Of a stretch of 64,000 nucleotides of DNA, positions 36,991 to 43,721 are shown in pieces (the first letter of the stretch is position 1; every line of letters begins with the position of its first letter). The notes under the pieces were generated by a model. It ran no database searches. It was given only the letters and a program-made list of their open reading frames with translations, and was not told the DNA's origin. The position numbers and the translations under genes were made by a program. Source of the stretch: Cyanophora paradoxa CCMP329 (Eukaryota; Plantae; Glaucophyta); assembly GCA_004431415.1 (NCBI GenBank), contig QPMI01000096.1, positions 62,001-126,000 of the forward strand, read 5' to 3'.

Positions 36991-37315
36991 TTTTTTTTTT
37001 TGAGAGACTACGGTGGGGCGAACCCCCCGTAGGTAGTGATATTAAAGACAACAAAGCAATCACAAATCAAAGATACAGTAAACTAGCACAAAATATATAC
37101 AGAATCAAGAGGGATCACGAGAAGGGACACGATCAGAAGAACGCAAAAGATAAGGAGAACGAGCACGAGGAGAAGGAGTAGAAGAGCTCAAGGGCGTCGA
37201 TGCAGAAGTACTAGTCACACTAGAACGACGAGGAGCACGGGGACGCAGCAAATAAGGAGAACGAGCACGAGGAACTACAGTCGAAGACGAAGATCTAGAA
37301 CGCTGCATGCGCACA
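36991..37315 (-). mobile_element. Probable 5'-truncated non-LTR retrotransposon 3' fragment (poly-A tail + terminal stem-loop)
   Basis: On the minus strand: C/T-rich ORF end (..PRARSPYLLR repeated twice, stop), T-rich UTR, hairpin CTACGG-GGGG-TTCG-CCCC-A-CCGTAG (37008-37032), then A11 (36991-37001). No clear TSD. Confidence 0.55.
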
Positions 37316-37395
37316 CGAAATTGTCACGTGCTCGTACTACGATCGCGAGCTCAAATTTCGAATTCGTGTCACGATCATCGATGAGCTTGACCTCG

Positions 37396-37540
37396 TGTTG
37401 CCACTCCACTACGTACCCTTTTGCACCACGTAGCAGAATCGAGTTGGACGGGCCTATTACATGATTGCCGGGGCCCCGTGCCCAAATCCGCTTTGGGCAC
37501 GTCGGGGCTAGGGCGCGTCGTGCCCAAAGGCCTGGGCACG
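37396..37540 (+). repeat. Left terminal inverted repeat
   Basis: tgttgccactccactacgtaccc..cgtgcccaaatccgctttgggcacg..cgtgcccaaaggcctgggcacg; reverse complement of 43358-43502. Confidence 0.95.
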
Positions 37541-37578
37541 GCGGGTAGAGCAGCGTCGTGCCCAAGTCGTGCCCCGCG

Positions 37579-39165
37579 ATGGCGGGAGAGCAGCCTGGCA
37601 GCGCGGCAGGCGGGGGCGTGCAGGCTCCAACTATGTGGTCGTTCTGTGTGTACTTGCATAGCGAAGTTGGCAATCCAGCGGAGTGCTTGCCGACGATGGG
37701 CAACATGGTCCCAGCACCGCTCATACCGTCGGCGGAGCCCATATTCAGGAAGCTGGTAGACAGGAAGCTTCTTCGTCCGGAGATACAGCAGATAGATCAG
37801 CTGCGCTTCTGGCAGTGCTGGCGGGGAGCTACTGTGCGACTCTATCATGACGTGCGAGTCGTACTGCCGCGTGCAAGCAACGCCGATCGACTGATCTGGA
37901 CTCGGGCATGCGCAGGAGTTCGCCGTGGTGGTCGAGGGAGGGCCCGTTACCCTCATCGTCGCGCCGGCCAAAGTAGTGCAGCCCGACCTGGCGCACTACG
38001 GCCTGGTGCGCTAGCTAACGTGAACGATATCCCGCGCCTGATGTCTCCTGCAGGGCCTCCCACCGGCCGGCCCTGCAGCTCCCGCAGCGCTAGCAGCGGT
38101 AGCGCCTCGCGCCCCCACGGCCGCATCCAGCGCGGGCAGCGCCGCCGGGAGCGGTGATGAGGATGACGGGCTGGAGCAGTATGAGCGCTTCCTCAGTCTG
38201 GACACGGATGGCATCTTCGGCGGGATCAGCGCTGACCAAGCGAAAGACCAGGTACATGATCCGGGCACGATCCGGGCACGTACGGGGCACGTCTGAGCAC
38301 GGGCCGTGCACGCAGATCTTTGGAAAGGGCGCGCGAGCGAACATCAAGAACCTGAACCGATTCCTTGCCGCCCCGTTTCGTCTGCACTACGGGGAAGCTG
38401 ACGGCCTGAGCAAGGTGAGAGGACAGAACACGCTGGTCATTGCAGACATGGAAGACGCGTGAGTGGCTGCGTTCTTTTGGAAGCAGCACAAGAGCAGCGC
38501 AAACCTTGCCTCGCAGGTTGGCCGTCCTCCTGGACAGGACGGTGGAGACCTCAAGCATCCCAGCGAAGATCAAAGAGAAGTGCACGGAACGGATGAAACA
38601 GCGGCTCCAGACCCTCAACCCGTACGAGAAGACCCGAGCACTGCTGGAGGTCAACAGGATAGCACTCAGGCAAGGCTCAGGAGCAATCTTCGCACAGGGG
38701 GCCCAAGCATGCGCCCTCGCGCGACGACGAAGCCAGCACTCAGGCTCCCCCGTGCGTTCCCGTGCTTGGGCACGGTCTGGGTACTATTTGGGCATGTCGC
38801 GTCCTTGGTCGTGCTGCACTCTCGTGCCCAAACGTGCCCCAATCGTGCCCCAACGTGCCCCATGGTTCGATGCCGAGCACGCGGATTCCAAGGTGCTCAA
38901 CTCCAAGAAAACACCTCCGGCGGTGAGAGCACTGCTCCTCTTATCTCTCCTTTCATTTCTTAGCGAATCCCAGTTCAAGTACTTCCTGTGCATACGGGAG
39001 ACGGTCAAGTCCAAGAGCACATACAAGCAGGGCCACATCTTCCCCAAGTGCAACAAGCACGGCGATCCGCCGTCGGGCTGCCTAGGGGTGTACGGGATCA
39101 AGCAGCTCATTCAGGACACCGCAAAGCTAGCTGCGGCCCAAAAAAAGGCGGCGGCGGCAAAGTAG
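37579..39165 (+). CDS. Transposon-borne second gene of unknown function (multi-exon; C-terminal Cys motif weakly zf-GRF-like)
   Basis: ATG at 37579. GT-AG introns join MAGEQ..RLYHD|EFAVVVEGG..HYGL|GLPP..AKDQ|IFGKG..MEDA|LAVLLDRTVE.. and a last exon FKYFLCIRETVKSKSTYKQGHIFPKCNKHGDPPSGCLG..AK*. The exon structure around 38650-38900 is uncertain. Confidence 0.65.
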
Positions 39166-39816
39166 ATCCAGTGTCTATCTCCTAGTAGCAGTCCTAGTAG
39201 CTCTACTAGCATTGATAGTGTTGCTCTATTAGGGTTTTTGCAGCGTATCTTCCTTAGAATTGGGTCGTGCACTGGTCGTGCCCGGCTCGTGCCCAAACAT
39301 GCCCAAATGTGCCCCGTCATGCCCAAACCGACTTGATCCTGAATTTAGCAGTGATTGACGTCGCGGAGCACGATTGCGCATTGAACTGCACATTTGCCAT
39401 GTGAACTTAACAGTATTGATATTTTACAACGTTTTGATGAAGAAAGGCGATGCGAAGAACTTCAGCATGACATGTTCCGCGTCGCTCAGAAGTCTGACCA
39501 TCGGACTCGCATTATGATGTGAAGCCAAGGGTCATGAACTCATGATGAGGCCTCGAAGACCTGAAGCAGTTCCGACCCGTCCGAGAGGCCGCACAAGTTG
39601 AATTTGAGAATGCTGAAGCCTTGTTTAACTCGTATTCATGAAGCTTCATGGTTCGCTCCCTCTTTACCGGTTTCTGCTACTTGCTCGTGCCCACGTCATG
39701 CCCAATCGTGCCCAAGTACGTGCCCAGACGAAGTTCGGACATGCTCAAGGAGGGCACGACTCGGAAACTCTTTCACAACGAAAGGCTATTCCAAAATCGA
39801 TCGTAAACTGGCTGCA

Positions 39817-42800
39817 CTACTTGGCATTAGAGGGGCCCGCCTCAGCCTCAGGCTCGGCGGGGCCAGCCGCGGCCTCTGCCGCGGCAGCGGCCTCCTTCTC
39901 GGCGCTCTTCTGTACTTTCTTCCAAGGTTTCTGGATGCAAGAGCGGTTCTTGCACGCGTCCCTCCCCGACTTCTTGTGGCACTTTGACGAGCAGATGATG
40001 TCTTCGTACTTGCAAATGCACTTCTTGTTCGTGCAGCCAGTCGTGCAGTTGCAGATCTTGCTCGGCCTGTCGATTTCGATGGCGCACCAGTCAAAGAACG
40101 CTTTTCTGCCAGGCAAGACATGGCAGTCAGAGCGCTGAGAAAGAATGCTGGAGGAAGACGGACCTGAGGGTTACAGGTTCGGTGCTGGCGGCGGTGATGC
40201 TCTCGATGAGATGCTTGAACCCGGCAAAGCCGCCGGTCTCGCCTGGAGGGGCAGGATGCCGCATAGAGCACACTTCGTCGGCCTGGAAGAGGCGGGGCTG
40301 AGAGTCGTCATCGTTGCGCTGGACTATACCGGCAGCAGTCTTGAGGATGTACTTGTTGAAGCCCGTGCCGACCGCAGCAATGACCGCGTGCACCATTGCG
40401 GGCATGCGGGCCTCGTCCAGGGCACGCGGATTGCAGTCCTTCACGCTGATGGATACCAGCTGCGCGCCCAACGTGAGCTCCATTGTCGTGTCCAAATGGT
40501 GCTCAAAACCATACCCAAACGTGCCTCGCGGGGCACGTTTGAGTATGATTTGGGCACGTCGGAGCATGGGGTTTGGGCATGACAGAGACGCACGTCGCCG
40601 ACTGCAAGGTTGGCGATCTCCCCGGCTCTCTTGCGGGCGAAGTCAATCATCCTGTTCCTGTACGCCGAGAGACGATCGTTCAGGACCCCTACGTAAGCCT
40701 TGTACTTCTCGTGCTCCTTCTGCGGGAACAATGTCAGTGCCGACAGCCATTAACGTAAACAGGACATAGCGAACCATGAAAGCGATCGGCATCCCCTCGA
40801 TGGTGCCACGACGGAAGCCGCCTTTGAGATGGCGCTCTGCGGAGTCCAAGTACTGCTCCGATTCCTTAGATTCCTCCTCCTCCATGTCCTTCACATACTT
40901 GTCCCAGAGGATCTGCTGCTTGTCGGTGGGCACCCAGCTGTCCCGGGCAGCTGCAGCCTCAACATCTTCGTCCGTGCCGACATCGACAGTGATTCCCGCA
41001 TCCTGCACGACGGGCATGGGAGGGAGCAGCATCAAAGCGTTCAAGAAGGCCTAGGGAGGTGTGCACCTTCATGAGCTCCTGGAGTGTAGTGCCCTGCACG
41101 ACCTCCCGCTCGTTGTAGACACGATCAGAGGAGGCGGGAGCCAGGTTTCCGAATCGCTCGGACGGATCTCTGTTGAACATGACCTTGAAAGGCGTCTGCT
41201 TGTGCCCCTTGGTGAAGATGGATGTGTTCATCTGCCACTGGACCTGTGCCTGGGTTGGTTGCAGGGCGCGAGCATGTCGGCACGGTCATACCGGGCCCAG
41301 GGCGGACACCCAGTCTTTCGTTCCGTTGAAGAAGCAGTACGCAGTGACTCGGCGGCCGAGCGTCCGGTTCGCGCGCTCCACAGAACCTGCAAAACACGGT
41401 CATACCCGAACATGCTCAAACATGCTCGGCACGTGCTCAAAAAGATCGTTGGGCACGATTGAGCATGATGTTGGGCATGTCGCGGGCATGACGCGGCATG
41501 GCGGGGCATGGCGAACCTTGGTGCCAGGGACGGTAAGGCGCGCCGGTGATGATCACTATCTTGCGCCCCGTCACTCGCTGCCATTGCTTGCACGTCGAGC
41601 GAACAACCTGCGTCCACTTTCAGCTGATATGACGGCCCTAGGCAGACGTCCAAATGTACCCTGTTTACGAACTCGGACCCGTTGTCGTGATGCAGCACTT
41701 GTGGGACTCCCATCACCTGGAAAATCTCGACAAGAGCCTGTGCGACGCACCAGGCGGCCTTGAATTCCAGCGGCCTCAGGATGCTGAACCGAGAGAAGTG
41801 GTCCTGTAAATGCACCCATCATGATCAATGAACAGCCAGACAGATGGTGTTGAACAGCGAACCCGGACGTGCAAGACGTATCTGTACCGGCGAGTCGGGT
41901 GATCGAACCACTCGACATCCTCGCAGTCGAGCCTGTCCATGGCCGCCGCTTCCTCGTCGGTCTCAGGGATCCTTGGCACTCGAATCGGGATGGGAAGCTT
42001 GCTGAAGTCCTTGAGGTCGATGACGACGCGAGACCAGGCGGACTTTGCGACGATAGGCTTCATGCCCGCGAGCTTCGCAGCGAGCTCGACCGCCCTGTTG
42101 ATGGCACAGTACGGGCAGCGCTGCGTACGGGTGTCAGTCTTGCTCAGGGTCCCCGCGCGGGCAGCTGCAGCGAGCACCTTGCAGAAGTACTCGACGAACT
42201 TGTCTTTGATGGCATAGACGCGCGAAACCTTGCCCTTGACGGTGTACGCAGCCTCGTGCGCCGCGTTATGGTACTCCTGCGCGCGCGTCGTCACGTCGTG
42301 CTCCGGGCACGGTTTGAGCACGATTGGGCACGATGTTTGGACACGTCCTTACCGACAGGATTTCGAAGACCTCGCGGGCGTCCTTCGGCAAGATACGCAC
42401 TTGAGTAGGGGCCGTCGCCGCCACCGCTCCAGTGTTGTTCTTCTGGCGCTTCTTGGCCACCTGCACTTCCTGCATGACATACACCGCGGGTCCGTTCGGG
42501 TCGCGCGGGTTTGGCTGCTCGACTAGAACGTAGTTGCCGGTGCGGTTCTTGATCCGCTGATCGTTACTCTTCTTGGCCCTCCCCTCCGCTCGTCGCTCTT
42601 GTTCGGATCCGCTGGCGCCTCCAGGTCCTTCCTCTGGACGCGCGCACGCACGACTGGCTTCGACGCGTTCAGCCGCTTGATCGCCTCCTTGTCGTTCGCG
42701 TCCCCGGCTGCCTTCATGTCCCGCTCCCAGACCAGCGCGTTGTAGCGTTCCGTCTCGTCGAGTGCGCGCTCCGCGTTGGGATTCCCCTGCTCGTCCTGCA

Positions 42801-43090
42801 TGTCCTTGTGCTTCCGGAATGGCGCTAATTCGTTGCACGCCTTTATGAACTCTTCGTACGTCCAGCGCACGGTGTGCCGCGTGCTGGTCGTTTCCTCGCT
42901 GGGCGCTGCGCCGCCGTCCGAGCCGTCCGATTGCCGCTGGGTCGCAGCAGTTGGTGCCCTACGCTGCTCCGGAGGGACGACATACGCGCCAGGCGGCGGG
43001 CCAGCTGCTGCCGTGCTGTTCCCGCCACCATTGCTTGAACTGCTCGAAGGCCCGCGCGTGCCTGCTGGAGCTGATCTAAGAGAGATCTAG
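39817..43090 (-). CDS. Ginger transposase/integrase (HHCC-like + rve DDE + C-terminal Cys-rich domain), at least 8 introns; apparent 1-nt frameshift near 42580; start uncertain
   Basis: Spliced: EYHNAAH..RCPYC; SRVVIDLKDF..YVLHVR|DHFSRFSILRPL..VLHHDNGSEFVNR|VVR..GAPYRPWHQG|SVERANR..WVSALGP|VQWQMN..TPFKVMF; C-terminal CNCTTGCTNKKCICKYEDIICSSKCH. Introns include 42277-42352, 41804-41862, 41608-41659, 41387-41516, 41244-41291 and 40460-40593. Confidence 0.9.
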
Positions 43091-43357
43091 CAAGATGCCC
43101 GCCAGGACAATGGCCGCGGTGGCCCTCCTTGTGATCGCAGTCGCAGCTCGAGAACGACGAGATCAGCTGCTCGATGTGGCAGGTACACTTGCGGCCGCAC
43201 CACGCGCGACCCGCGAGCACAGCTGTCTGTAGCGCGAAGCTGCAGAAGACGCAGAACTGCAGAATCTGGCCGGCCGCCTGAATCTCCTCCGGCGACAGGC
43301 CCAACATCGCTGCAGCTGTCTGGGCTCTAACACCTGTCGTGCCCAACACAAAGCTTA

Positions 43358-43502
43358 CGTGCCCAAGCCTTTGGGCACGACGCGCCCTAGCCCCGACGTG
43401 CCCAAAGCGGATTTGGGCACGGGGCCCCGGCAATCATGTAATAGGCCCGTCCAACTCGATTCTGCTACGTGGTGCAAAAGGGTACGTAGTGGAGTGGCAA
43501 CA
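43358..43502 (-). repeat. Right terminal inverted repeat
   Basis: Ends ..ggtacgtagtggagtggcaaca and is followed by the TSD cctcg. Confidence 0.95.
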
Positions 43503-43721
43503 CCTCGATCGAAAACGCTTCACAGGGGTACGAGATCTAGCACCTCCAATCGGAGCCGGCTTGTCGCCGCAGCAGCACAGGCTGGCAGCAGCAGTTCATG
43601 TACAAGCAGTTCGCATGAGAACGCTTCTTCCGGGCCGCTGCTGGCCCGGATCCAGGCTTATGACCGGACGGACATAGCAAGCCTGGGCGGACCAGCGGGC
43701 GCTCTGCCCAGCGGGTAACCC

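Follow-up and report, generated by a model that had tools for sequence, protein, structure and literature searches.

Ginger elements are characterised by a retroviral/Gypsy-type integrase core with the catalytic Asp-Asp-Glu (DDE) residues, an H2C2 finger N-terminal of this core, termini of the form TGTNR...YNACA and terminal inverted repeats (TIRs) of about 40-270 bp (PMC2836005). Those described encode a single transposase with 1-4 introns; Ginger2/TDD elements make a 4-bp target-site duplication, or 5 bp in TDD-4 and TDD-5, and Ginger1 has GPY/F and YPYY motifs and a CCGG/CCGT target (Bao, Kapitonov & Jurka 2010, PMC2836005). Here we describe an element found in a 64,000-nt stretch of Cyanophora paradoxa CCMP329 (contig QPMI01000096.1, positions 62,001 to 126,000; hereafter the window), in which nine clusters of one short word, CRTGCYC, lie in the TIRs, in introns and in the 3' untranslated regions (UTRs) of two convergent genes. 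The element fits a Ginger2/TDD-like assignment by the criteria of Bao et al. (PMC2836005), made on sequence features: it shares with that group an H2C2 finger and DDE core, TGTTG termini, 146-bp TIRs, spliceosomal introns and the absence of GPY/F and YPYY motifs, and its target-site duplication is probably one of 5 bp, as in TDD-4 and TDD-5. Its own features, in contrast, are the second convergent gene, 10 + 6 introns, a long N-terminal Cys/His region, a C-terminal CxC-like region and the internal arrays of the TIR word. The word "subterminal" does not occur in the Ginger paper (PMC2836005).

To place the word relative to the genes, contigs of four RNA-like public runs (four different studies) were aligned to 37450-43440. 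That these runs are RNA is a guess as to their kind, and their status as spliced transcripts rests on canonical, strand-consistent joints and on agreement with gene models. EukProt models of other copies, P0013 (934 aa, transposase) and P0004 (344 aa, second gene), map exon by exon and agree residue for residue. A cluster was defined as at least three CRTGCYC matches with neighbours no more than 40 bp apart, and the scan with this rule returned the following nine:

37477-37574, no strand assigned: array A0, six units, all perfect CGTGCCC, spread over the inner TIR and the left subterminal region
38252-38315, plus strand: array A1, a 64-nt GT-AG intron that is almost all array, with five units antisense to the mRNA and 10-11 bp apart (joint in all four runs; tandem repeat period 11)
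38752-38892, plus strand: array A2, a 141-nt GT-AG intron with seven strict units in inverted arrangement (from a micro-exon and P0004)
39266-39324, plus strand: array A3, 3' UTR of the plus-strand gene, with six units in direct orientation
39686-39758, no strand assigned: array A4, five plus units and one minus unit in the 3' UTR of the transposase gene
40460-40593, minus strand: array A5, a 134-nt intron, a near-perfect palindrome centred on 40528/40529 (joint in four runs; inverted repeat I12 with 23-nt arms, 87% complementary, 0 nt apart)
41387-41516, minus strand: array A6, a 130-nt intron with four plus units followed by six or seven minus units (joint in four runs)
42277-42352, minus strand: array A7, a 76-nt intron with one plus unit and four minus units (joint in four runs)
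43338-43421, no strand assigned: array A8, five units, all perfect, spread over the right subterminal region and the inner TIR

All nine clusters lie inside the element, where an initial annotation made from the letters alone had put them, and none was found in the other 57.9 kb of the window. The window as a whole (G+C 69%) holds 104 CRTGCYC matches against 53.6 +/- 7.6 in dinucleotide shuffles, 56 of them within the element (9.2/kb) and 48 outside it (0.83/kb, the chance level); for the perfect CGTGCCC the counts are 31 inside and 18 outside. Within the element the matches are concentrated in RNA-supported introns (30 in 1159 bp, 25.9/kb), in the spacer and 3' UTRs (11 in 654 bp, 16.8/kb) and in the TIRs (8 in 292 bp, 27.4/kb). 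Exons hold four isolated matches in 3793 bp, or 1.05/kb, again the chance level (intron versus exon density, Fisher test p = 1.5e-15). This bears out the annotation's claims that five of the seven internal clusters lie in introns and two in the convergent spacer and that confident exons are free of them; the word is far from equally frequent in exons. The two spacer arrays can be assigned further, since transcript contigs extend to 39392-39463 for the plus-strand gene and as far as 39695 for the minus-strand gene, so that both arrays lie in 3' UTRs. The broader statement in the annotation's title, that the introns of the element are arrays, holds for five introns (64, 141, 134, 130 and 76 nt) but not for the other 11 of 16, which are plain and short (48-64 nt, 0-1 matches each).

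The TIRs themselves carry the word in inverted pairs, as had been noted. Their outer 80 bp or so lack it and the inner half carries two inverted pairs of CGTGCCCAA, matched in the left TIR at 37477+, 37495-, 37519+ and 37534-; more copies follow immediately inside each TIR. Counted over both ends, the 11 terminal and subterminal units are without exception perfect. The motif pairs of the inner TIRs and subterminal regions sit where the transcripts of both genes begin. Another word, CAACGC, gave 16 scattered matches in the window and no cluster.

The spacing of the units is helically phased. Among same-strand neighbours 18 of 54 gaps measure 10 or 11 bp and seven more 20-22 bp, and for same-strand pairs no more than 65 bp apart the resultant vector is longest for a 10.5-bp period (R = 0.77), a length reached by 0 of 2000 random placements in the same arrays. 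The spacing of 10-11 bp, about one helical turn, read by eye in the initial annotation thus stands up to a period test. This test used 66 units, 10 of which had been recruited by a spacing rule that favours phasing; the 56 strict matches show the same pattern. When aligned, the units (written out for the arrays as CGTGCCCAAA) are informative only in tCRTGCYCaaa, with high information content confined to the 7-bp core. Spacers differ between arrays, being of a CCCAAA type or, in 38252-38315, of a CCCGGAT type, yet the period is the same.

The arrays also record how they arose. Tandem Repeats Finder (TRF) describes them as tandem repeats of 10, 11 and 20-21 bp whose adjacent units are alike, and therefore the arrays grow by local duplication; the arms of the palindromes carry a common rare variant unit, CATACYC, which indicates inverted duplication. 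Departures of internal units from CGTGCCC are mostly GC-to-AT transitions, chiefly at positions 2 and 6. Single-transition variants across the six G/C positions number 8, 5, 2, 1, 1 and 0, a distribution that hints at position-specific tolerance in the motif core, the duplicated units not being independent of one another. Taken together, local duplication, tandem as well as inverted, enlarges the arrays, and GC-to-AT transitions are the main cause of their decay.

Along the element the arrays are no more than about 1.1 kb apart over the whole 6.1 kb. To assess how even this is, end and spacer arrays were held fixed and all choices of array introns among the existing introns were ranked, a test devised post hoc. 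In the transposase gene, where three of ten introns are array introns, the gaps are 805, 925, 863 and 1066 bp and their standard deviation ranks first of 120 choices; the array introns of the second gene rank first of 15 for evenness by the same measure. Ranked by largest gap the observed choices come fifth of 120 and second of 15, respectively. The rhythm of 0.4-1 kb had already been recorded in the initial annotation before this test was made.

Three of the arrays are palindromes, and as RNA the 134-, 130- and 141-nt introns fold far better than their shuffles (z = -5.0, -5.8 and -3.4, unmatched by any of 200 shuffles). From the antisense strand the two longest hairpins form just as well, or better (z = -5.0 for the 134-nt and -5.6 for the 130-nt intron). 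Because the antisense strands fold as well, the palindromes point to a symmetry at the DNA level, like that of the TIR pairs, and selection on sense-strand RNA structure was rejected. Arrays A1, A3 and A7 consist mainly of direct repeats, and their folding is unremarkable (z = -0.4 to -1.6).

The element that carries these arrays spans 37396-43502 when read with TG...CA ends, giving termini TGTTG...CAACA and a length of 6.1 kb; it extends beyond the coordinates 37470-43425 of the initial annotation. A repeat search returned one long inverted repeat, 37395-37540 versus 43358-43503 (146 nt, 99% complementary), and the layout is that of an integrase-type transposase gene on the minus strand convergent with an orphan gene on the plus strand:

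37391-37395, no strand assigned: left target-site duplication CCTCG (the identical 5 bases flank the right end)
37396-37540, plus strand: left TIR, terminus TGTTG (inverted repeat I1, 146 nt, 99% complementary)
37705-39165, plus strand: second ("cargo") gene, 7 exons, orphan protein (contigs of four studies; P0004; in-frame upstream ATG at 37580)
39817-43307, minus strand: transposase gene, 11 exons (ten CT..AC joints in four runs; full-length paralogue P0013)
42587-42588, minus strand: 16-nt loss, frameshift (the 16 nt are present in the four RNA-like runs and in P0007 and P0013; P0013 reads ...KSDEQNQKAAEGRAKK)
43050-43051, minus strand: 1-nt (C) loss, frameshift (the C is present in all four runs; P0006 and P0013 read ...QQARAGPSSSSSNGGG across it)
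43358-43502, minus strand: right TIR (inverted repeat I1)
43503-43507, no strand assigned: right target-site duplication CCTCG (matches the left flank)

The occurrence of CCTCG on both sides, as read from the flanks of a single copy, fits a 5-bp duplication, the alternative being a 3-bp CTC with GTGTT termini. The element is a young, complete cut-and-paste DNA transposon of Cyanophora paradoxa. In the window copy two frameshifts, both in exon 1, disrupt the transposase frame at sites that P0006, P0007 and P0013 read through, and this copy is either defective or misassembled. Beyond the left end the flank at 37090-37340 is unusually A+T-rich for the window and contains a direct repeat with a spacing of about 110 bp (…ataaggagaacgagcacgagga…), which accounts for four isolated CGTGCTC matches just outside the element and may be a remnant of another repeat.

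Splicing of both genes could be followed in the contigs. In all four runs 14 segments are skipped, with GT..AG ends in the plus-strand gene and CT..AC ends in the minus-strand gene; donor and acceptor of 38459-38516 were read by hand, and 38752-38892 follows from micro-exon evidence. The final model counts 16 introns, 6 of them in the plus-strand and 10 in the minus-strand gene; all 16 are GT-AG and are upheld by spliced contigs and independent gene models. They include the one marked as tentative at 38760-38880 in the initial annotation, which is real but runs from 38752 to 38892 (141 nt). Exon 5 of the plus-strand gene ends at 38751 and the intron is followed by a 30-nt micro-exon, 38893-38922, seen as the short side of a 38921>38973 joint in three runs and matched by P0004, which reads ...HSGSP/VLNSKKTPPA/FKYF across it.

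Many of the 16 5' splice sites read GTGCG, GTGCT or GTGCA, near the array core GTGCC/GTGCT, and an array unit could easily serve as, or evolve into, a donor site. Run X16 alone yielded an abundant contig in which 43201 is joined to 40105 (3095 nt skipped, CT..AC ends, one side only 29 nt long), linking the first 110 coding bases of the transposase gene to its last exon. We considered this joint as a short isoform encoding a Cys-rich DNA-binding protein and rejected it, the junction codon being TGA; the joint reflects either unproductive splicing or a copy with a deletion. Transcripts of the second gene come in at least three forms: that of the window and P0004, that of P0005, and one with 38753-38954 replaced by about 31 other letters. 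P0005 has both ends in common with the second gene of the window and a different middle, where an array is translated in the gene model ("GARLGTARAHLGTTRAR"). P0005 becomes similar to the window at 38865-38866, directly after array A2, and this array borders a rearrangement breakpoint.

The order of domains in the transposase is an N-terminal Cys/His-rich region, an H2C2 finger, a DDE integrase core and a C-terminal CxCx3Cx4CxCx6Cx3C region. P0009, a 733-aa model of another copy, matches rve (PF00665) at 35.9 bits against a Pfam cut-off of 32.6 and Integrase_H2C2 (PF17921) with E 6.5e-4, a score below Pfam's cut-off; its best solved relatives are foamy-virus integrase cores (prototype foamy virus, PFV, E 1.8e-13). 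In the window itself the open reading frame (ORF) 41228-41815 matches rve with E 4.9e-6. In P0013 the finger HNAAH...CPYC occupies residues 327-362, the catalytic motifs are VVIDLKD / HHDNGSEF / SVERAN, with D392, D483 and E525 placed from the motif positions, and eight Cys fall within residues 19-67. Neither GP[YF] nor YP[YF]Y occurs anywhere in the 934 residues of P0013, which together with the CCTCG target separates the element from Ginger1. The rve, H2C2 and PFV matches and the convergent second gene agree with the first description of the element as an integrase-type (Ginger-like) two-gene transposon.

The C-terminal Cys block (39820-40104, minus strand; P0013 residues 836-885) has the pattern CxCx3Cx4CxCx6Cx3C and further Cys, recalling CXC/tesmin-type zinc clusters. 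Weak Atlas leads for this exon are MSL2-CXC and CSRNP_N at 0.82, Pfam gave no match and a PDB sequence search nothing below E = 1; we treat the CxC-like pattern as a lead, not a finding. AlphaFold2 (AF2) modelled the exon with a predicted local distance difference test (pLDDT) score of 61. The second protein has no Pfam family, no Myb/SANT or other recognised domain and no useful Atlas look-alike, and its AF2 model (pLDDT 38) is unusable.

All database relatives of the two genes are EukProt proteins that carry the label EP00741_Cyanophora_paradoxa. A HMMER scan of 1.84 billion representatives with the ORF that covers the H2C2 finger and first Asp gave three matches with a single true relative, P0002 (tig00000849_g4765), the other two (P0001 and P0003) being spurious hits to bacterial Big_1 repeat giants. 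P0002 is 40% identical over 206 residues from the H2C2 to the second-Asp region and, judged by its sequence, represents a second, diverged integrase-type family in the same genome. P0002 aligns without a gap at an array intron and at a plain intron alike, and its alignment is uninformative on array-intron gain; P0008, with its locus L002, proved to be an unrelated cluster member. The family is multi-copy, with annotated relatives on at least nine other contigs, including an adjacent pair of transposase and second gene on tig00000385 (P0015, P0004), and it is transcribed and correctly spliced in four studies. P0007 (tig00020934) has lost the DDE core, although its N-terminal region, H2C2 finger and C-terminal Cys block are retained, and from its sequence it is possibly a regulator or a non-autonomous copy. 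P0010 (tig00021463) is without the H2C2 finger and the first two catalytic Asp, and both P0007 and P0010 are apparent internal-deletion products.

What could the arrays do? By analogy with phage Mu, En/Spm TnpA, the Harbinger second protein and Tn7 TnsB (PMC9308760), we suggest with moderate confidence that they are dispersed docking sites through which an end-binding protein, encoded by the element, folds or coats it. Extra copies of the subterminal repeat (consensus tCRTGCYCaaa) would survive only where they leave the coding sequence unbroken, that is in five introns and both 3' UTRs. A protein recognising the inverted pairs of the inner TIR would then also load cooperatively onto the internal arrays, where the spacing of about 10.5 bp would place all sites on one face of the helix; candidate binders are the N-terminal Cys/His region and the C-terminal CxC-like region of the transposase and the orphan second protein. 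Since the arrays are no more than about 1.1 kb apart, we propose that protein-protein contacts between them could fold the element and join its ends for transposition, and the same protein coat could also keep the chromatin of the element open. Here the motif as a binding site, the identity of the binder and the effect of binding are what we infer. Identity with the end word, a core kept while spacers vary, one site per turn, inverted pairs and a regular distribution make up the anatomy that would be expected of docking sites. The same reading is favoured by the length of the array introns (64-141 nt among plain introns of 48-64 nt), by the folding of the palindromes on either strand and by the transcription and correct splicing of the family in a host that methylates most of its repeats (PMC12344493).

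Several points weigh against docking sites. The internal units are degenerate and only about half of them are perfect CGTGCCC, which fits weaker or no constraint; the visible copies of the element are about 99% alike and hence give no view of conservation over time. A spacing of 10-11 bp also arises from tandem duplication of a 10-11-bp unit without selection, neutral insertions would likewise be kept out of exons, and the even-spacing test was made after the data were seen. In family scans of the element's proteins no sequence-specific DNA-binding domain beyond the integrase H2C2 finger was recognised, and the AF2 models of the candidate binders (pLDDT 61 and 38) are too poor to be of use.

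The main rival explanation is a neutral by-product, which we consider rather unlikely. Subterminal seeds would have been copied inward, for example by template switching in gap repair after excision, expanded by slippage or foldback and purged from exons, with no function at all. Such seeding and slippage explains the degeneracy and the tandem structure: the 10-, 11- and 20-21-bp repeats with their like neighbours, the CATACYC common to the palindrome arms as after inverted duplication, and the many GC-to-AT transitions in internal units next to perfect end copies. The structural breakpoint of the second gene at 38865 adjoins array A2, so that arrays coincide with rearrangement. However, seven independent seedings of one word would be needed with nothing else brought in from the TIR, and blastn found no copy of the outer-TIR sequence inside the element. 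Neither the most even spacing available nor the constancy of the period across different spacers is predicted by neutral expansion, nor are array introns of 130-141 nt beside plain ones of 48-64 nt. An origin of the arrays from eroded nested miniature inverted-repeat transposable elements was rejected, no outer-TIR sequence being present inside the element.

Two further explanations are weaker than the neutral one. The arrays might be a cis-regulatory or chromatin signal read by the host, be it a transcription-factor site, an intron enhancer or a bent nucleosome-positioning sequence, that boosts or shields both genes. The motif pairs at the transcript starts of both genes, the position of arrays inside transcribed regions, the alternation of a GC core with an A-tract every 10-11 bp and the expression of the element in a repeat-methylating genome all agree with this; yet in 58 kb of host sequence the word occurs at chance frequency and is never clustered, and array A1 lacks the A-tract, which makes a host signal improbable. 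Least probable of all is an RNA-level role, in which intronic hairpins would bring the ends of over-long introns within reach of splicing by making them effectively shorter, or would supply a small-RNA pathway regulating the family: the strong folding of the 134-, 130- and 141-nt introns speaks for it, but the two longest hairpins are as good or better in antisense and bear no sense-strand G-U signature, A1, A3 and A7 are mostly direct repeats that fold ordinarily, the orientation of units relative to the mRNA differs between introns, and the word also occurs in the untranscribed outer context of the TIRs.

The docking-site reading can be extended, tentatively and with some doubt, to whole-element self-recognition. 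Each integrase-type family of Cyanophora would hide evenly spaced, phased arrays of its own end word in introns and UTRs, and a family-specific protein would coat or loop the element through them, pairing its ends and shielding it from silencing by CpG methylation. In Cyanophora 32% of CpG are methylated; methylation covers the majority of repeats, and genes that carry it are silent (PMC12344493). Yet this family is transcribed and spliced in four studies, and a CpG is present within the motif unit. If self-recognition were true, introns would be a selfish element's storage for cis-acting DNA signals. If the arrays are bound at all, they would offer a long eukaryotic cut-and-paste element a way to pair its ends or escape silencing without coding cost, and would give the introns of selfish genes a DNA-level role. 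Bound arrays would also make for a compact study system: the unit is 10 bp long, the candidate binders are three, the alga can be cultured and its methylome has been published. The integrase-type transposase and the orphan second gene are almost without relatives in current databases.

How does the element compare with other systems? Introners are intron-generating transposons, described in papers that mention neither Cyanophora nor glaucophytes (PMC9860276, PMC12130899). Some array introns resemble them in consisting almost entirely of transposon-related units, and the 5' splice site GTGCG/GTGCT resembles the word. In contrast to introners, however, the array introns have no element termini, the overlaps at their borders are inconsistent (0, 2, 3 and 6 nt) and no arrays exist outside the element in 58 kb of the window. 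We therefore rejected array introns as introners, for which a mobile unit with its own termini and duplication, present in many host genes (looked for in this window only), would be expected. PIF/Harbinger elements have two genes, the second of which encodes a protein that binds subterminal repeats sequence-specifically and recruits the transposase. The Cyanophora element likewise has two genes, but its second protein lacks Myb/SANT and its transposase belongs to a different superfamily.

In phage Mu, MuA binds several repeated sites per end, and an internal enhancer bound by the transposase helps to assemble the synaptic complex. Repeated binding sites for TnsB in each end of Tn7 are described in PMC9308760. 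Both transposases are of the same retroviral-integrase superfamily as that of the Cyanophora element. The enhancer of Mu, however, is a single one and of a different sequence class, and neither Mu nor Tn7 is known to have multiple evenly spaced internal arrays or to involve introns.

Repeated transposase-binding words near the ends of an element are textbook knowledge. A literature search found no published account of end-motif arrays in a transposon's own introns, nor of one word set out in phased, nearly evenly spaced arrays over a whole element, in its introns and 3' UTRs. The subterminal repeat arrays of En/Spm, with their 12-bp TnpA motifs, and of Ac, with its hexamers, are bound by an element protein that pairs the ends. 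Galileo has THAP sites in its long TIRs (PMC3688188). In all three, as in the Cyanophora element, one short word recurs many times close to the ends, in direct and inverted orientation; their arrays stay within the terminal few hundred bp, whereas the Cyanophora element has seven more, in steps of 0.4-1.1 kb, in its introns and 3' UTRs.

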